DNA from: Oopsacas minuta
Lineage: Eukaryota > Animalia > Porifera
Reading direction: 5' to 3'
Length of the DNA: 64,000 nucleotides
Assembly (NCBI GenBank): GCA_024704765.1
Contig: JAKMXF010000277.1
Location: forward strand, 186,001 to 250,000
Shown here in pieces: positions 2,796 through 59,432 of this stretch. Position numbers and translations under genes: made by a program. The notes beneath the pieces are model-generated. The model made no database searches and was not told the origin of the DNA. It worked only from the letters and a program-made list of their open reading frames with translations. Within the stretch, counting starts at the first letter, position 1. Every line of letters begins with the position of its first letter.

Positions 2796-5130
2796 TTTCT
2801 GTGTGTATATATATATACATGATGGTAATAGTAATTGTGTCTACATATGTGCTAAACAATGTAAATAATGAATTGAATTAAACAGCTTGATAATCAAATC
2901 TAATTGAGAATTGCGTATTAAATACAAGTACCAGATTCTCCAATAATTAGTCAATCATTAGCAATGCATAAATGAGGATAATTTGAATATTGAATTTCAA
3001 TACTATCCTCAATTGAATATTATTAATCAAGACTAACGCTAACTAAGGTAAAATCCTATACAATTTGAATGGTATATATTATTCAATGCAAAAATATAGC
3101 TGAGATTATTCATTAATTCAACCATAATGTTTTGCTTAAAGATATGATAAAATATTTTTGCATAAAATTGTAATACAACCATCGATTTTCGCCAAATAAT
3201 TATTGTTGTAAATTTTCAAATAATTATATTAAATTCATGAATTTGTTTGCGGAACATTGTAGGAGTAGAAATCCCAATCATGCAATTACCGAAAACTGGC
3301 AATTGACAATGGGATAATTGTATAATTGTTATCCAGGAATGTCTGAAAAATGCCGGTTTATGCAGGTTCAGTGTACTCACGAATATTAGAAACAAATTTC
3401 TAAATACGTAGATGTTTCTCCAATTTACTCCATAAAAGATTCCTGATGCTAATCAATGGAACAATCATAAACAGTTTCAATAACAAATTTCCCAAAGTTT
3501 TACGAATTTAAATATAAGATTTCCAATAATTTTACTCCATAAAAAGCATAATAAATTGGAGTATAAAAGTGTATTTGAATAGTGACAATACAATAAAGAG
3601 GAAACTCAGTAAAGCAAAAATGTTCATGTTAGGTATTAGCGTTTTACAACCAAATTTAGAATTCAATAAACAGCTGGTAGTAATTCTTTGGAATATAAAC
3701 AAGTTTAAAATATGGATTCTAGTATCAGTTGATTATCTTTGGATAGAAATGACGAAAAATGTTAGAATCCTTTAGCCTGCGAAAATCGAAGAATTGAAAT
3801 TCTAAAAAAATGAATTCAATGGATGCCGGTTATAAGAACATACCGGATATAAGCACCATCTTCTGGAAAACTGTTCTCATATATTCCTGTATATTTCACG
3901 CTGGTTATAAGAACAGTATTGCTACTCCCAAGGGGTTCTTATAACCAACATTCCCCCCTATTTCAAATGATGAATAAATGAATAATCAAAAATATTTAAA
4001 TAAACATAGCAGAATGAGTGGAAAAAATCTCGCATATCGACCAGTGTATTATTGCCAAGAGGTAAAATTCCTTGAAAATATTCCAAGTATAATTCAGCTA
4101 TAAATATTTACATTTGCATCGCAAAGTAAAGCATAAATGCTGATTGACAGAACAAATATGTGTAATAGAATTGATTCAATTGTAAATGATAATAAGCAAC
4201 TTTAAAATACATATATTAACTCACCTTATTCATGACAAATAAATCTCAATAAAATTATTTAGAGTTAAGAACTTAAATATCATTATACCATATAGACAGT
4301 GGTATAAATAGGGGAAATGTTGAAATAGTTTGCAAATATAGTAATTGTATTAAAGTCTAGGGAAATAAATATAAATTGATTAGCCCAACATTAATTAGAT
4401 AATTTAAAAGTGTATTGTAATGTAATATAGGGTGAAATGAGGATTTTAGTATTGGCTTGTATTTGGATTAAATTCCTCAATTCAGAAGAATTTCTATAAT
4501 TACACGAGGAATTTGCAATTAGCAGATATTGGAGGTGTCGAAAATTGACAATTCGGTGGAAAATGAGGCAAGAATAACTGTTTTTTTTAAATAAGGTTTG
4601 AGATTAAATAATTCAAAAATGGTGAAAATTTCTTGGCAATAAATTTTCAGCTTTGAGAATGTGGTCGGGTGACATTATTCCATTATTGTATGACGTCTCC
4701 AGAAAGTATATTGTTTATTCCATAGATATAGCATATGGATTGAGTCATTATTGGTAAGTTGTGCTAGACAAATCATCATCTGCATCAAAGTATGCATTAT
4801 TAAGATTGTGTATTGAAACTGCAACGAAATTAGGATCACCGAAAAGGTTTATCGTACACAATGGAATAAAAAAACCAGTCATTCAGTTTAATAGAGCCAC
4901 AGGTTAAACAGATCGCGGTCTATGCGTAATAATCGTGATGAATCGAATCACTGAAAGTTTGGCACTACGTTTTACCCAATTCCGCAAAATTTGAAAGAGT
5001 TTACACATTTTTAGATATTAAAATTACGGAATTTTGCCGATCTGAAAGAGTTTACTTGGAAGGAAATTAAAAAACAAATAATGATGATCAAATTTTCAAA
5101 AAAATCAAAGATTCGGTAAAGAATGGGAAA

Positions 5131-5345
5131 CAGTGTTCTCGTCAGGATTGTGTAATAGGGGGGTGCGCCGTACACACTCTGTGCACAATACGCGTAAAAA
5201 TACACCCTTAAGGAAAAAGAAGATGATGGCCCGTTTTTTGGGTGAATATATAAAATTGTTTATCCACGATAGAGGGGTACACTTTGTCTATTTAGGCACG
5301 ATAGGGGTGGCTGCGCCCCCCCAAAAAGACCTAGCGAGAACACTG
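5131..5345. mobile_element. hAT-family MITE
   Basis: TIRs CAGTGTTCTCGTCAGG / CCTAGCGAGAACACTG; 8-bp TSD ATGGGAAA / AAGGGAAA (7/8). Confidence 0.8.
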
Positions 5346-5976
5346 AAGGGAAATGCCAATGTTAATGAGGCTTCAACGCAATTTATGAAAAACGGACATA
5401 AGTTTAGACAATGCTAGAAATCAACACTTTAATACTAATATTTTAGAATAGAAACTTTCAAAAGAGAACTTAAATATAACTCAATCAGACTAATGGATAG
5501 ATAACCAATAAATGCAGTGAATTGAGATTATTCAAATATAATTAAACTAGATTTGAAGATATTCTGTAATACAGCGCTAATGTATCAGCAATAGATTACA
5601 AGCTATTTCGGAGAACAATGCTAAGTTCAAGGTAGGAATAATGTTCAAGTGATATAAATATAGTATGTACAGCTTGAGTTTCTGTTATAAATAGTCAAAT
5701 ACACAGATGGCGATGGCGATGGCGAAACCCAGTGTAGATTGCTAAGAAATAGATACGAACAAAATCAATAAGATTTCAATGGGAATATTTTGAGCCAGTT
5801 GCAAAATCGATATCACTTCAGAGAGTATTACTAAATAATGATCAAAGAAATAAAATAAGATAACATTAGATAATTATGCAACTTGCTTTTAACCATCAAA
5901 CGAGGAAAATTGTATACTTCTCAGTTTTATGTGATAATAATTACACAAATATGCTAGACGAATAAAAAGTCAAATA

Positions 5977-6277
5977 CAGTAGAAACTCTATTTGTGGGGG
6001 GAGGGAGGTACAGCGAATCTCCAGATAACACCCCATTCCCATTTATAATTTCAAATATAAATGTCCTTTAACAAGAGATTTTTAGGTCAATACGGGTAGC
6101 CACTCCCTCCATCGACTGTTTTTTATAATTTTGTTGGTTGAATCCAAAAATTATAAGAAACTTTATTTTGGGAAACACAAATATTTCAATTCATCATAGC
6201 TATAAATACTTGTTTTTTCCAAATTGAATATTACAGAAATTTTTTCGTAGAATTCCCCACTTAAAGAGATTGCACTG
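5977..6277. mobile_element. pogo/Tigger-like MITE
   Basis: Imperfect TIRs CAGTAGAAACTCTATTTGTGGGG / CCCCACTTAAAGAGATTGCACTG, flanked by TA on both sides. Confidence 0.65.
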
Positions 6278-53610: not shown

Positions 53611-54022
53611 CAAGCTTGGCAAAAGTTACTACATAGTTAGGTCAGGTCAGGTCACCGTGAAATATATTTCATACAGGTCAGGTCTCAAGATTAATCAGGT
53701 CATTTTCAGTCATGTGACAATCAATTGAGTGCAATCAATCAACTGGGTATACTGCCAGTTTTTACTCAGTATTGAATTTGACGAGAGCCAATTACATTAA
53801 AATATATCAAACTCGAAACTAATTGATCGTATTTTGGAAGTAATTCAATTCAATTTATGAGTTAATTAAGTAACAGGATTAGAAAGGTAAATTATCAGAA
53901 AAGAATACAGTAAACTCTTGAACCCTGAAAATGACCTGAAAATAACCTAAAATGACCTAAAAGGATCTGAAGTGAGCTGATTCAGGTCAGGTAAGGTCAT
54001 GACCAGAACTTTCAAAAGCCTG
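53611..54022. mobile_element. hAT MITE with AGGTCA/TGACCT subterminal repeats
   Basis: Imperfect TIRs CAAGCTTGGCAAAAGTT / AACTTTCAAAAGCCTG; 8-bp TSD GTTTGAAT / GTGTGAAT. Confidence 0.7.
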
Positions 54023-54942
54023 GTGTGAATACGAAATGTAATTATTTTATTAAAATGAATCGAAAACTTTTCCCATTCTAATTCATTTGATAATAAATAC
54101 TTCTTAGTTTGCCAAAACAAGCTAAAATCGTGCAGAAATCTAGCCTAAAATTAATGACATCCTCTTTGATGTATCAACAACATCAATGAATATAATGGAT
54201 AATAAGACTGTATGGGAATAATGTGACCACCACATACATACAGTAACAATTATATACAAACTCCATTTGCTGTATCCAAGCACTAAATCACATAGAATTT
54301 AATGATAACCAATCAAATTAAAATCTCGTTAAACTATAAAGTTCGATCCTTCTATAATATATACATTTTGGTAATGTTGAGAAGTATAAATGCCATTGTA
54401 CAGGTAGATCGAGTAAATTGGTAGTTCAAAAGGTTAATAATAACAATATGCTAAGTCTATGCGATGTAATCTCAATTTGAATTTTGAACTTTGACACTCG
54501 GTTGCTTCTGGGTACCTGAATTTGTCAGAAATGGAATCTAGATTTCATTCAAAGCGAACAAATTTTGACTATCCGTTGGTGTTCGCATTAACGAGATTCC
54601 ACAGTATATTACCCATACACCAACTTCAAAGGCTCGTAAATACCTCAATGGTGTTACTAACACAATTCGGAGGCAAAATAGAATATAAATGAACAAACAA
54701 ATAATTAATGGTTATGATTAAGTCTTCAATCAATAATGGAGACATACTTACATAACTGAAAAGTTGTGAATAAGATGAGGTATAATCCAATTGATTTTCT
54801 CACAGAAATTGAGAGATTAGATAGGAAAGTTTCTCAGATTACAGAATAAATATTCAAGAAATGAATTCCCATAATTTATGTGGATTTAAGCATATAAGTA
54901 GGCTATTAAGTTCATGTATATTCAAAATTAAATATTAATGAA

Positions 54943-55917
54943 ATGGCAAATGCATTTCCAGATGATGAAATAGAAGTAGCAAGCAAATTTTACGAAAACC
55001 CAAAGGAATATGATTTTAAAGATTGCAAATATTCACTGTTGATTGTAGGACCATGTGGAGCTGGGAAAAGTGCGTTTTGTAACTTTCTACTCAAAGAGAA
55101 GAGATTTGCAGAAGCTGCCGGTTTGTTAGCTGGAACTGAGGAAGCAGCACATTGTACTTTCCATTGTAAAGATGGAGATATGTTAGTTGTAGATTGTCCA
55201 GGATTCTGTGATCCCAAACGATCACATAAAGAGATCATGACAGAAATTGGCAAGGCAGCTATTCTTTGTAGAGATGGAATGGATGCGATTGGTATTGTAA
55301 TTGACCCAACTACTCGATTCAGTGAAACTCAAAAGATAAGCTACGAACAAATAGAATTGTTTGGTGGTGAATTTTGGAAACATTCATTCATTATTTTCAA
55401 TCACGAAAAGAAAATTCAAAAGAAACTCAAATATAATAACGCAAGCGATTATATAAATAAAACAATGAACGACCCAAAATGTCCAGCAGAATTTGCAAAA
55501 CTTTTGAACAAAGTTGGCAAACGGTTCATTTGCGTTGAAAGTTCGAAAAAATGGAATGATGAAGAGTATTGGGGGAGTATACGCGATGGGTTGTTAGCAA
55601 TGGTTTTACAGATAAAACTAAACAATGAAGGTTCCTATGTAAATTGCTTTATGGAGCATGGTAAACTAACATATAATGGGCTAGTTGGAATGTGGGACGA
55701 AATGAGAGGGGAAATTGATGCTATGAATAAGAAAATAAAAGAACAGGATAATCATATTTGGGATTTAGAGACAGAGAGAAAGAAGGAGAGTACAAGTTAT
55801 CAAGATGAAATTGATCAAATAACTGAACAATTCAGTATGAGGGTTCAACTGTATGAGGATCAGATAGCGGAATTAAATAAAAAAGTTAATAAAAAGGGTG
55901 GATGCATTGTAATGTAG
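54943..55917 (+). CDS. AIG1/GIMAP-family GTPase with coiled-coil tail and C-terminal CaaX (KKGGCIVM), copy 1, intronless
   Basis: G1 GPCGAGKS, G3 DCPGF, IVIDPTTRFSE, FWKHSFIIF (AIG1 signature), coiled coil, CIVM-stop. Confidence 0.88.
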   Translation: MANAFPDDEIEVASKFYENPKEYDFKDCKYSLLIVGPCGAGKSAFCNFLLKEKRFAEAAGLLAGTEEAAHCTFHCKDGDMLVVDCPGFCDPKRSHKEIMTEIGKAAILCRDGMDAIGIVIDPTTRFSETQKISYEQIELFGGEFWKHSFIIFNHEKKIQKKLKYNNASDYINKTMNDPKCPAEFAKLLNKVGKRFICVESSKKWNDEEYWGSIRDGLLAMVLQIKLNNEGSYVNCFMEHGKLTYNGLVGMWDEMRGEIDAMNKKIKEQDNHIWDLETERKKESTSYQDEIDQITEQFSMRVQLYEDQIAELNKKVNKKGGCIVM

Positions 55918-55959
55918 AACTAAGAATACTGTTAAAATCATGTATTATTGTTTGAAAGA

Positions 55960-56884
55960 GTGTTTGTATGATAGAATAGTAGTCTGTGGTCATATGGATA
56001 GAATATATTAAATTGTGTATACAGAATCTGAAATGCTGGGATACTTTATATCAAAGTGATATAAAGTATATGCAGTTTCTAGAAAGTATATCCAAATGTT
56101 CTCAATGGGGTTTAGATCTGGTGATTGAGCTGGTCAGGGCAAAGTCTCGACAGCATTTTCGACGTACCAAGCTGTGTCAAATTTAGAGGTATGTGAAAGA
56201 GCATTCTCTTGCTGGAACACTTGATTAGGGTAGATGTACTTGTTCTCTAGCCAGAATAGTAAGAGACAGCTACTATACCCAATACATTTCAATCCACACC
56301 TCACGCTACGAGCTGAGACAGGTTAAGGAATGGATTCAGCAAGTTTTGAAGCGATCTCGAAGGATGAATCACGTCTATTGGTGCCACCTATCCTTTTTAG
56401 GGATCGAAGTATTTGGGGAGTTAACTTGGAGGGCGGACCTGACCTAGAAAGTATCTGTGCAGAGCCAGTCAGTATACATTTTGCAATTATCTTACCCACA
56501 GAGCTTCTAGAAATATTTCCAACTATTGAAACAATCTCCCTGCATGATTTCCCAGCTATGAACAGTCTAATAATTTACCCCTGACACTTTGCGAAAAACC
56601 TTATTAGAACCAATTTCAAATTCAAAGTACTATTCGATAGAGAATTGATGTGAATATGATTACTTAGAAGTAGAATTATCAAATAAATGTATGCTAAGTT
56701 TTATCAGTGGAAACTGAAAAATCTATCACGGCTAAATCTGAAATCAATTCAAGGTTGAAACTGCTCGAACCGAATACTGATATTCGGTTGGTAACGAATA
56801 TTGAAGTATTTGTCAAATAATATTCGGTTGCAACCTTGGAAACAATACATAGCAGAGGAAAACATAAAGTTTGGCCACCCAGTG
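55960..56884 (-). mobile_element. Dead, internally deleted Tc1 (DD34E) transposon
   Basis: Terminal TA-CACTGGGTGGCCAAA at 56886-56870; translation GKSCREIVSIVGNISRSSVGKII (HTH), RSGPPSKLT, VSARSVR, FQQENALSHTSK and LP*PAQSPDLNPIENIW, with 34 residues between the last two acidic positions. The other terminus was not clearly found. Confidence 0.88.
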
Positions 56885-56934
56885 TATAAGTAGGTTTGTA
56901 AATCAATTTATGTTCAAAAATAATATCAATTGAA

Positions 56935-57909
56935 ATGGCAAATGTATTTCCAGATGATGAAAGAGAAGTAGCGAGCGACTTCTACGAAAACCCAAATCAA
57001 TATAATTTTAAAGATTGCAAATATTCACTGTTGATTGTAGGACCATGTGGAGCTGGAAAAAGTGCGTTTTGTAACTTTCTACTCAAAGAGAAAAGATTTG
57101 CGGAAGCTACCGGTTTGTTAACTGGAACTGAGGAAGCAGCACATTGCATCATCCATTGTAAAGATGGAGATATGTTAATTGTAGATTGTCCAGGATTCTG
57201 TGATCCCAAACGATCACATAAAGAGATTATGGAAGAAATTGGCAAGGCAGCTATTCTCTGTAGAGATGGAATGGATGCGATTGGTATTGTAATTGACCCA
57301 ACTACTCGATTCAGTGAAACTCAAAAGATAAGCTACGAACAAATAGAGTTGTTTGGTGGTGAATTTTGGAAACATTCATTTATTATTTTCACTCACGAAA
57401 AGAAAATTCAAAAGAAACTCCAATATAATAACGCAAGCGATTATATACTTCAAACATTGAACGACCCAAAATGTCCAGCAGAATTTGCAAAACTTTTGAA
57501 CAAAGTTGGCAAACGGTTCATTTGCGTTGAAAGTTCGAAAAGATGGAATGATGAAGATTATTGGGGGAATATACGCGATGGGGTGTTAGCAATGGTTTTA
57601 CAGATAAAACTAAACAATGAAGGTTCCTATGTAAATTGCTTTATGGAGCATGGTAAACTAACATATGATGGGCTAGTTGGAATGTGTGACGAAATGAGAA
57701 GACAAATTGATGCTATGAATAAGAGAATAAAAGAACAGGATAATCATATTTGGGATTTAGAGACAGAGAGAATGAAGGAGATTATAAGTTATCAAGCTTC
57801 AATTGATCAAATAACTAAACAATTCGTTATCAAGATTCAACAATATAAGGATTCTATAGCGAAATTAAACGAAAAAGTTCATACAAAGGGTAGATGCATT
57901 GTAATGTAG
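56935..57909 (+). CDS. AIG1/GIMAP-family GTPase with CaaX (KGRCIVM), copy 2, intronless
   Basis: Same length as copy 1 (324 aa), same motifs; differences concentrated in the C-terminal coiled coil. Confidence 0.88.
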   Translation: MANVFPDDEREVASDFYENPNQYNFKDCKYSLLIVGPCGAGKSAFCNFLLKEKRFAEATGLLTGTEEAAHCIIHCKDGDMLIVDCPGFCDPKRSHKEIMEEIGKAAILCRDGMDAIGIVIDPTTRFSETQKISYEQIELFGGEFWKHSFIIFTHEKKIQKKLQYNNASDYILQTLNDPKCPAEFAKLLNKVGKRFICVESSKRWNDEDYWGNIRDGVLAMVLQIKLNNEGSYVNCFMEHGKLTYDGLVGMCDEMRRQIDAMNKRIKEQDNHIWDLETERMKEIISYQASIDQITKQFVIKIQQYKDSIAKLNEKVHTKGRCIVM

Positions 57910-57939
57910 AACTAAGAATACCGTTAAAATCATGTATTA

Positions 57940-58156
57940 TTGTTTGAAAGAGTGTTTGTATGATAGAATAGTAGTCTATGGTCATATGGATACAGAATCT
58001 GAAATGCTGGGATACTTATATCAAAGTGATATAAGGTATATGCAGTTTCTAGAAAGTATATCCAAATGTTCTCAATTGGATTTCGATCTGGTGATTGAGC
58101 TGGTCAGGGCAAAGTCTCGACAGCATTGCGACGTACCAACCCGTGTCAAATTTAGA
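57940..58156 (-). mobile_element. Truncated second copy of the Tc1 relic (transposase 3' end only)
   Basis: Near-identical to the sequence after GIMAP copy 1, including LP*PAQSPDRNPIENIW with the same stop; homology ends at ~58156. Confidence 0.8.
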
Positions 58157-59077
58157 CTAAGAAATATAGCTGTTTAATACTTTAGCTAACCTGAAGCACT
58201 AAGAGTCGATAGTATAAGAAATAATGTAATAGCATAAATATAATACATACCATGTAAGCAGCATGAAATATTCTTATCATATTGGGTAATGGAAAATACA
58301 CCTTTGTATGTAATAGAAAGTTGTCGAGCAAAACTAGTTATAAACATCGAAGAAAGATATTTGCAGCTTAGGGATTGAGCGAATAATAGAGATCTAAGTA
58401 TGCTATAGGAATAAGAGATAGGGAAAATAATATAAATTCAGGTATATTCTTGAAAAGGCATTGAAGAGGATTGAGAATGTTTGAGGAGACTTGCTACAAA
58501 TTGATAGGAATGATCAGGTTTCAATTACAGAGTAGAACCTGCATAAACCGACAGTATTTCTGATATGAAATAGCTTCCGACAAATAGAAATTCACCTGCA
58601 TAGAAAAATTGCTAATACGACAAAATTTACATGTCCCAACGAGTGCAGGTCCCACTATACTTAGAGAAGGTCACGAATTTGGAGAGCGTCCCGCGATTTC
58701 GGACATAATGCCCCAGCTGAAACTGACCATAAAGCATACTTCTAAAGTTCCGCCCTGCTATTCCACATATATATCGAAGTAATTATGGCAGTCCCTTGAG
58801 CTTCGATATAACGGGAGTTAATAGTAATTAACACAGTAATAATACCGCGTATTAACCATACGAATTAATGTATATAGAGCACAGTTTTCGTCTATATCAG
58901 TGGTGAGGATATTGCAGTATATAATATGAGGGTCTGTGTATTTTGTTTTTTGGTTTCTTGTTTATGGGAATTTTGTTTCGATTAATTGATCATGCCCCCT
59001 AATTGTAGTTGTGTTTTTCAAGCTATTTAATGTGGGTTTGAGCTTTTATATCGCATTCAATAGTTGTTGATCAGTGT

Positions 59078-59150
59078 GTTTCATTAGCGTTGTTGTTAAG
59101 ATCATTGTCTAACAACCCTGGTGCCCTCGGTTCGATTTCGCACCTGCCTC
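59078..59150 (+). pseudogene. tRNA-Val(AAC)-derived relic / SINE head
   Basis: GTTTCATTAGCGTTGTTGTTA (A-box-like), CTAACA anticodon loop, CGGTTCGATT (B-box); 3' acceptor stem does not pair. Confidence 0.4.
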
Positions 59151-59432
59151 AACTGTAGATTACCTGAAATTGAACATTACATGATTCTTGAAAGTTTCCG
59201 TCATTTCAATATACGTAACCCTAATATTGGCAAAACTGTGCTCTAACAGAGCTTAGAGCTGAGCTCTTTATATATAATCTCTAACCATACTGGCATCAAC
59301 TGTAAATTCAAATTACAATAAAAATATCATAGAAGAATGAAACTTAACAAAAAACAGATTGAATATTCCCTAATATCTGTAATCTAATATTAAATGCTGA
59401 ACGAAACATTAACTAACGAAATATAACGAAAA

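Follow-up and report, generated by a model that had tools for sequence, protein, structure and literature searches.

A GIMAP-type GTPase gene copied to the tip of a Tc1 remnant in the sponge Oopsacas minuta, possibly with the help of a transposase

The window analyzed here is a 64,000-nucleotide stretch of the genome of the glass sponge Oopsacas minuta (assembly GCA_024704765.1, contig JAKMXF010000277.1, positions 186,001 to 250,000 of the forward strand). Toward one end of it lie two GIMAP-type GTPase genes in tandem, with most of a Tc1 transposon remnant between them. The locus divides at sharp boundaries into three segments, A (54893–56187), B (56188–56884), and A′ (56885–58156), whose features are listed in Table 1. 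Segment A comprises a TA, a 50-bp leader beginning TATAAG, a 324-aa AIG1/GIMAP ORF, a 148-bp 3′ flank, and a 122-bp Tc1 stub. A′ is a copied piece of roughly 1.3 kb (about 1.27 kb) that carries an intact GIMAP-type GTPase gene and is placed exactly at the outer tip of the Tc1 remnant. Native upstream sequence, here called x, continues to the left of 54893, unique sequence, here called y, follows A′, and the proximal parts of both flanks occur only once in the genome. The contig holds no second copy of B displaced further downstream by the insertion, and the assembly contains this one version of the locus only, with no haplotig, empty site, or single-copy haplotype found in it.

Table 1. Coordinates of the features of the duplicated locus, numbered from the first letter of the window.
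Feature	Position	Strand	Details
Start of unit A, copy 1	54893..54942	+	TA (54893-54894) opening a TATAAG (TATA-like) motif, and 50-bp leader
GIMAP/AIG1 GTPase gene, copy 1	54943..55917	+	Intact single-exon ORF, 324 aa, C-terminal CIVM; Pfam AIG1
3′ flank, copy 1	55918..56065	+	Genome-unique, not Tc1
Tc1 stub, copy 1 (duplicated part of remnant)	56066..56187	-	DLNPIE-region transposase coding; TGA replaces W codon
B, non-duplicated remainder of same Tc1 remnant	56188..56884	-	Colinear with stub; 5′ inverted repeat ends at 56884
hAT-like MITE, 89 bp, within Tc1 5′ region	56750..56838	.	High-copy family
Novel junction 1	56885..56934	+	TA (56885-56886) abuts Tc1 terminus, then TATAAG and 50-bp leader, copy 2
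GIMAP/AIG1 GTPase gene, copy 2	56935..57909	+	Intact 324-aa ORF, 86% identity to copy 1
3′ flank, copy 2	57910..58035	+	3/126 aligned sites differ from copy 1; 21-bp and 1-bp deletions
Tc1 stub, copy 2	58036..58156	-	Truncation point and TGA as in copy 1; ends at novel junction 2
Novel junction 2	58157..58159	+	One unmatched C, then TA, then unique sequence y

An earlier note on this DNA, made from the letters alone, had described a tandem duplication whose homology opens with TATAAGTAGG. We find the same start, at 54893 and 56885, with an offset of 1992 that equals the offset between the two start codons (54943 to 56935). Before the TA, similarity between the copies is undetectable, so the upstream limit that the note had drawn there stands. 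The first 10 nt of the unit are the same in both copies, in the remaining leader they are separated by 2 indels and by differences at 10 of 49 aligned sites, and the final homologous base in copy 1 is 56187. The unit proposed in the note, a TA followed by the GIMAP gene and Tc1, is right in that the same Tc1 piece lies 3′ of both genes, but the second unit is partial. Since copy 2 is followed by no more of the Tc1 than a 121-bp stub (58036–58156), the structure is A-B-A′ and not two full units. The piece was also misread as the transposase 3′ end; the remnant is in fact cut at about 56065|56066, near residue 270 of a transposase of about 327 aa.

Both genes encode recognizable members of the family. 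Pfam AIG1 (PF04548) matches residues 32–233 of both copies with scores of 85 and 83 bits (E 6e-24 and 2e-23; cut-off 27), and both translations contain GPCGAGKS at G1 (GxxxxGKS) and DCPG at G3 (DxxG). At the guanine-specificity motif G4 ((N/T)KxD type), copy 1 has FNHEKK and copy 2 has FTHEKK, not the canonical NKxD; we take these to resemble the ‘FTxxE/D’ form of G4 of GIMAPs. The coding sequences have accumulated no indels in 975 bases, compared with 5 in 296 non-coding bases (Poisson P 7e-8), and both ORFs are maintained by selection. The next GIMAP paralogue in the genome is only about 34–36% identical, and no further close paralogue was found in the assembly. Copy 2 retains only 50 bp of native upstream sequence, opening with the TATA-like motif, and its ORF is still intact; beyond −50, as the note had proposed, Tc1 and MITE sequence stands in place of the native sequence. 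An immune role for these sponge GIMAP-type proteins is putative, by analogy only.

The Tc1 tip lies directly on the TA of copy 2, just as first described, with the plus strand reading ...GGCCACCCAGTG|TA at 56884|56885. Read in reverse complement as CACTGGGTGGCCAAAC..., the tip agrees with the 3′ terminus, likewise flanked by TA, of L031, the sole other copy of this Tc1 family, whose tip reads GACTGGGTGGCTAAAG, and similar TA-flanked termini are found in other Tc1 families of the same genome (L057, L062, L069, and L085). A CAxTG-type terminus with a TA flank, as in Tc1/mariner elements, occupies 56884–56886, and it is the only end in the window. On these comparisons position 56884 is a genuine Tc1 terminus. 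The family consists of two decayed copies, which are about 77% identical. B encodes the N-terminal DNA-binding domain region of the transposase and has an internal deletion near 56259–56265. When DDE_3-bearing ORFs of the same genome, which represent intact transposases, were compared with the remnant by tblastn, they matched over aa 18–117 (E 2e-9) and aa 229–268 (E 3e-5), as for a DD(E/D) transposase with an N-terminal paired-like HTH, and the motif (W>*)PAQSPDLNPIEN is present; Pfam searches of the broken pieces alone gave weak HTH matches only (E 0.03–0.09). The MITE at 56750..56838 belongs to a family with termini CAAGGTTG..., more than 40 genomic copies, and clean 8-bp target duplications at L005 and L023.

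What remains of the Tc1 is only a fragment. It has neither a 3′ inverted repeat nor the TA target-site duplication that a complete element would show, and its homology to L031 and to intact transposases ends at about 56066, around residue 270, where a palindrome in the 3′ flank of copy 1 (56044–56066) adjoins the truncation point. The boundary at 56187|56188, considered as a cryptic transposon end, bears by eye no likeness to the inverted repeat.

The W-to-stop change that the note had seen in both Tc1 pieces is confirmed: both read P*PAQSPD(L/R)NPIEN with the same TGA, where L031 has TGG. Each copy has the truncation point as well as the TGA, so both changes are older than the duplication. 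The common truncation point and TGA, together with concordant divergence (6/121, or 0.05, in the stub against a GIMAP dS of 0.084; Fisher p 0.48), exclude two independent Tc1 insertions, the alternative that the note had set against its own reading. The GIMAP gene and the Tc1 piece were copied in one co-duplication. Against the fuller copy L031, the Tc1 of copy 1 is colinear across 56187|56188, so the new junctions are 56884|56885 and 58156|58157; copy 1 has the ancestral surroundings, and A′ is the insertion, at the boundary between the terminal inverted repeat (TIR) and the TA. The overall divergence between the copies is about 7%, and it is uneven along the unit (chi-square p 1.4e-4), so the history includes later gene conversion or uneven constraint.

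Taken as a cause of the GIMAP duplication, a transposase-made break is what this arrangement points to, short of proof. Novel junction 1 carries the TA needed for Tc1 strand transfer, and it joins a transposon terminus to target sequence, as alternative transposition does. We favor, with a probability of roughly 0.5, a transposase-dependent event at the solo Tc1 end, whether through bimolecular strand transfer between sister chromatids or through break repair, in which the second junction was made by end joining. That a transposase took part and that the sister chromatid was used are both points that we infer from a single locus.

The history under this reading would run as follows. A Tc1 would have inserted downstream of an ancestral single GIMAP-like gene, on the minus strand, and then decayed, gaining the W-to-stop change and losing its 3′ part including the 3′ inverted repeat. 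The order before duplication would have been x-A-B, with the Tc1 5′ tip directly before the flank TAAGAAAT.... Later, at a time corresponding to about 0.07–0.08 substitutions per neutral site, the remaining 5′ inverted repeat would have undergone a break or strand transfer exactly at its outer tip, and the tip would have been joined to a TA lying 1,992 bp leftward on the sister chromatid and 50 bp before the GIMAP start codon. Behind the tip would then stand the second copy of about 1.27 kb, made up of the TA, the leader, the gene with its 3′ flank, and 121 bp of Tc1, and end joining would have sealed the far end of this copy to the old flank, leaving an extra C before a TA. The likeliest agent would be a Tc1-family transposase acting in trans on the solo end. 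By one route, bimolecular transposition, the sister copies of the solo end would pair, one end going to the TA and the other being resected and rejoined; by the other, the cleaved Tc1 end would undergo templated repair.

The right-hand junction bears on this reading in both directions. We infer that the Tc1 5′ end was originally flanked by y, and the TA at 58158–58159 may be the target-site TA that this end had from the start; if it is, both new junctions fall at one point, the transposase cleavage site. Against the favored reading, this junction has no transposon footprint and has a C instead, where Tc1 cleavage might be expected to leave a TG or CA remnant, and by our estimate a TA would lie this close to the junction by chance with a frequency of about 0.2 in AT-rich DNA.

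The locus can also be read without a transposase. A replication template switch, or break repair with 2 nt of microhomology (TA), could have produced the duplication, with the breakpoint reaching the Tc1 tip by chance or through fork stalling at the inverted repeat. Small tandem duplications are frequent without transposons, the Tc1 family is apparently long dead and one-ended, the junction TA could be microhomology between the Tc1 flank and 54893–54894, and the right junction, with its 1-nt filler, is of the ordinary end-joining type. A random breakpoint, however, would fit both the tip and the TA at an estimated 3 or so of about 2,000 positions, and apparently no base of the inverted repeat was lost at the insertion. 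We consider a transposase-independent origin rather unlikely, while giving it serious weight.

An ordinary Tc1 insertion at a TA 50 bp upstream of the GIMAP gene would need no special chemistry at all, since every Tc1 insertion makes a TIR|TA junction. The present structure would then have arisen through subsequent tandem duplication or triplication that broke within Tc1, the excision of one complete Tc1, for which x|TA at 54892|54893 could be the site, and a further deletion. This amounts to at least 4 or 5 events after the insertion, against one duplication event in the favored reading, and on our reasoning it does not readily explain a stub followed by unique sequence after the second gene; we judge it improbable.

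Canonical two-ended sister-chromatid transposition was the mechanism proposed in the earlier note. The locus agrees with it in having a true TIR terminus joined to a TA, and any transposase involved must have acted in trans, but the two-ended reaction is not supported, because it needs both a 5′ and a 3′ end and the remnant's 3′ TIR was lost before the duplication. Given a 3′ end, the insertion of 5′ and 3′ ends of different chromatids into a TA would yield x-A-Tc1|TA-A-(partial Tc1)-y in one event, with interrupted gap filling leaving the stub. A weak TA-flanked candidate for a hidden 3′ end does exist at 55982, TA|GTCTGTGGTCATATGG (TA at 55980, candidate 55982–55997), but it scores at chance level against both the 5′ inverted repeat and the L031 3′ end, and it lies in a stretch (55919–56075) that is unique in the genome, with L031 and transposase homology ending near 56066. 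The canonical model also leaves unexplained a right junction (58156|58157) inside Tc1. Alternative transposition uses two compatible termini; with one recognizable terminus at this locus, the second would have to be the sister copy of that end or some other partner. The two-ended scheme is thus very improbable, and the solo-end (bimolecular) or break-repair variant fits better.

It is hardly credible that the published assembly, which used super-scaffolding and gap filling (PMC10280926), joined two haplotypes of a heterozygous locus in tandem, given the roughly 7% divergence with a pattern of selection on the ORFs, the absence of Ns from the region, an x that is not duplicated, and a join exactly at a transposon tip and TA, which is not an assembler's product.

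For the favored transposase-dependent event at the solo end, the genome offers possible sources of the enzyme. It contains at least 150 DDE_3 matches, many with ORFs of about 326–339 aa, and no autonomous member of the remnant's own Tc1 family was found in it. The closest intact transposase shares only 33% identity over the DNA-binding region, so cross-mobilization is speculative. One apparently intact Tc1 (L085, G000:C155) has a 370-aa ORF, 33-nt inverted repeats that are 97% complementary, and a terminus, TA|CACTGCCTGGCCAAAA, similar to the Tc1 terminus in the window; no long ORF was found near the TIR-pattern matches L062, L069, and others. A TIR-like match upstream of a GIMAP paralogue on another contig (C343, L068) is not TA-flanked and is probably due to chance. 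The more specific proposal, that a transposase from a different Tc1 family used the solo inverted repeat of an already dead family in a bimolecular reaction between sister chromatids and that this reaction gave rise to a maintained GIMAP gene, is one that we regard as possible and put forward tentatively.

Tandem gene duplication is usually credited to unequal recombination or replication errors, and for tandem duplicates made by cut-and-paste transposons the direct evidence is mostly that on maize hAT elements and fly P elements. If our reading is correct, the junction of a Tc1 tip with a TA would extend transposon-made tandem duplication to the most widespread DNA transposon superfamily and to the sponges, among which the Oopsacas minuta genome is rich in Tc1-like elements, and it would be natural evidence for gene duplication by Tc1/mariner alternative transposition in an early-branching animal. 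The new GIMAP gene would stand on a 50-bp TATA-containing core promoter, head-to-head with the transposon 5′ end. The locus is a natural promoter experiment, in which a gene has no more than 50 bp of its native upstream sequence and is still intact.

Templated ‘filler’ insertions and interrupted gap repair occur at the excision breaks of the P element, Tc1, and Ac/Ds. The likeness lies in nearby sequence being copied into a break at a transposon end and in a second junction end-joined with few untemplated bases; fillers, however, are usually tens of bases long, whereas the copy here is 1.27 kb, bears a gene, and leaves the inverted repeat intact. With the GIMAP/AIG1 (IAN) GTPases the sponge proteins share the AIG1 domain, the P-loop, the DxxG motif, and a C-terminal helical region, and they differ in their CaaX-like CIVM end. 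Lineage-specific tandem duplication is common to both, the family having expanded in tandem clusters in vertebrates, molluscs, corals, and plants (PMC7053062, PMC8857920).

For the use of a solo end the nearest comparison is with Sleeping Beauty and piggyBac substrates that lack one inverted repeat. Sleeping Beauty can mobilize solo-IR substrates from separate molecules, while in no system has true single-ended transposition been firmly demonstrated (Wang et al., 2014, PMC3952818). There a Tc1-family transposase uses ends from two molecules, as it would in the reading favored here, and aberrant products rearrange flanking DNA, but the assays were done on plasmids in cultured cells and with a transposase both active and matched, whereas here the event is read from a chromosome. 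For the product, the comparison is with alternative transposition by Ac/Ds and other hAT elements in maize, which yields tandem duplications bounded by transposons, including cases with fractured elements and one end-joined junction (Zhang, Zuo and Peterson, 2013, PMC3744419; Zhang et al., 2014, PMC4270019). In both systems the two units contain transposon copies or fragments; fractured elements occur among the natural maize cases, and in the re-replication variant the second junction is end-joined at an arbitrary point, as proposed here. The sponge locus differs in belonging to Tc1/mariner (TA target) in an animal and not to hAT in a plant, in having only one recognizable terminus, in being a single fixed locus where the maize events arose de novo, and in the loss of the reciprocal product, against which a matching target-site duplication would be compared.

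The duplication consists of two units, A and A', each carrying a GIMAP gene and separated by segment B, the rest of a Tc1 remnant. The first homologous sequence in both units is TATAAGTAGG, at an offset of 1992 that equals the offset of the two ATG codons, just as the earlier note had reported; the homology beyond the TA that the note had named as contrary evidence was not detectable, by alignment or similarity search, to the left of that TA. Several dispersed repeat families surround the locus (58862-59285, 53745-54000 and 58533-58650) and leave the duplication boundaries untouched. One of them, with dozens of ~400 bp copies at 72-87% identity, is possibly a SINE-like element.

Features of the GIMAP duplication and the methods by which they were delimited
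Feature	Position	Description	Method
A	54893-56187	first unit, GIMAP copy 1	repeat finding + global alignment
GIMAP copy 1 ORF	54943-55917	324 aa, intact, single exon	
Transposase residues 229-268	56095-56211	minus strand	tblastn, E 3e-5
B	56188-56884	between A and A'	repeat finding + global alignment
Transposase residues 18-117	56263-56565	minus strand	tblastn, E 2e-9
hAT-like MITE	56750-56838	89 bp, short version, within Tc1 5' region	genome similarity search
A'	56885-58156	second unit, GIMAP copy 2; then unrelated unique sequence (y)	repeat finding + global alignment
GIMAP copy 2 ORF	56935-57909	324 aa, intact, single exon	

On the plus strand, the sequence at 56884/56885 reads ...GGCCACCCAGTG/TA, where the TA is the opening dinucleotide of the repeated unit, and the reverse complement of the Tc1 tip is CACTGGGTGGCCAAAC. 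The 3' end of a related copy (L031, G000:C304) is GACTGGGTGGCTAAAG, adjoining TA; other Tc1 families in the genome (L057, L062, L069) have the ends TA/CACTG..GTGGCCAAA, and an apparently intact element (L085) terminates in TA/CACTGCCTGGCCAAAA. Given the tip's resemblance to these TA-flanked ends, 56884 is a genuine Tc1 terminus, which bears out the earlier claim that such a terminus directly abuts the TA of copy 2.

The Tc1-like element 3' of GIMAP copy 1 is decayed and lies on the minus strand, where it was mapped with intact DDE_3-bearing transposase ORFs of the same genome. An internal deletion near 56259-56265 accounts for the absent residues between the two transposase blocks, and all transposase sequence beyond ~residue 270 is missing. 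Across the assembly (61.46 Mb, 365 contigs), the only other copy of its family is L031, ~77% identical; homology between them ends at ~56065/56066, and L031 runs ~470 bp further to its 3' inverted repeat. Because, in addition, 55919-56075 is unique in the genome and a candidate 3' repeat at 55982 is weak, scoring at chance level, the remnant is one-ended. A palindrome (10+10 nt, CTTTATATCA aag TGATATAAAG) at 56044-56066 (~58014-58036 in copy 2) coincides exactly with the truncation point against the GIMAP 3' flank and may record the repair of the truncated end. The genome holds no autonomous copy of this family, and even the most similar intact transposase shares only 33% identity in the DNA-binding region. 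The closest intact relative, L085 (G000:C155:399498-402704, element ~484-2243), is flanked by TA and carries a 370-aa ORF and inverted repeats of 33 nt that are 97% complementary; it is a candidate active transposon. Beside L031, a run of N between long simple trinucleotide repeats (~4850-6200) may be an assembly gap. The MITE inside the remnant belongs to a high-copy family (>40 genomic hits; termini CAAGGTTG... / ...CAACCTTG; loci L005-L030). Target duplications of 8 bp are clean at L005 and L023; the 8-mers flanking the window copy show no clean match.

Aligned to L031, Tc1 sequence in copy 1 is unbroken across 56187/56188, so that adjacency is ancestral, and copy 1 retains the native upstream sequence (x). 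The junctions made by the event are thus 56884/56885 (tip to TA) and 58156/58157 (within Tc1, then C, TA and unique y), and copy 2 is a ~1.27-kb insertion that separates the Tc1 tip from its presumed flank. The earlier note's unit of TA, GIMAP and Tc1 stands in that a Tc1 piece, or stub, follows both genes, but the second unit is not complete, stopping inside Tc1 at 58156. Both stubs share the truncation point, both carry the TGA noted earlier where L031 has TGG, and their divergence (6/121, 0.05) does not differ significantly from GIMAP dS (0.084, 14.5/182.5 synonymous sites; Fisher p 0.48). These concordances settle the note's own refuting condition, independent insertions of discordant divergence, in favor of a single event: the Tc1 pieces were co-duplicated, from an element already broken and one-ended.

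Divergence is uneven along the units: 10/49 in the 50-bp leader (20%), 9/66.5, 2/61 and 3.5/55 synonymous changes in the first, middle and last thirds of the CDS, and, with corrected boundaries, 3/126 (2%) in the 3' flank and 6/121 in the stub; the neutral-like classes differ (chi-square p 1.4e-4, a value that predates the correction and used 2/124 and 7/122). Any history must therefore allow for gene conversion that later affected the 3' part, or for constraint that varies along the unit (a constrained 3' UTR and a fast leader), as this pattern suggests; the boundaries are unchanged by it.

Both ORFs match Pfam AIG1 (85 and 83 bits; cut-off 27) and are each other's sole close relatives genome-wide, with 86% amino acid identity against ~34-36% for the next paralogue. 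The CDSs differ by 65 substitutions and 0 indels, where 16 indels are expected at the non-coding rate (5 events in 296 aligned bases; Poisson P 7e-8); selection has therefore kept both open. Overall dN/dS is 0.8; it is 0.46 in the GTPase domain and reaches ~1.6 in the C-terminal helical third (55603-55917, 57595-57909; 26.5 non-synonymous vs 3.5 synonymous changes), differences that are individually non-significant. A run of basic residues and a CaaX-like CIVM terminus are retained in both proteins. Native sequence upstream of copy 2 is limited to 50 bp, which open with TATAAG, a candidate core-promoter motif.

We favor, at a probability of about 0.5, a transposase-dependent event at the solo end. 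Transposase might have paired two sister copies of that end, inserting one of them at the sister chromatid's TA 5' of GIMAP, while the second cleaved end would have lost ~700 bp by resection before it was joined to the flank; or the cleaved tip may have been repaired by sister-chromatid copying, then end-joined. Both variants are compatible with all junctions. A transposase role is favored by the exact tip, by the TA and by the original TA flank, to which the event may have returned; an old family with no autonomous copy, a nearest intact transposase only 33% identical in the DNA-binding region and a single locus count against it. A transposase-independent duplication, its breakpoint at the tip by coincidence, keeps some weight as the less likely reading. 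A multi-step history, in which the tip and TA are an ordinary Tc1 insertion site, is improbable. The canonical sister-chromatid transposition proposed earlier is more doubtful still: it requires a 5' and a 3' end where only one exists, and by that route the second gene would be followed by a complete Tc1 or by none at all, whereas the second unit stops inside Tc1. An assembly artefact is the least credible explanation.

The main text of the assembly paper (PMC10280926) contains none of the words 'transposable', 'Tc1', 'mariner' or 'GIMAP'. As to a transposase acting at a solo end, Sleeping Beauty can use solo inverted-repeat substrates on separate molecules; the same paper stresses that transposition from a truly single end is still unproven (PMC3952818). 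In maize, alternative transposition yields tandem duplications bounded by transposable elements; natural cases involve fractured elements, and the second junction of some products is an end-joined break (PMC3744419, PMC4270019).
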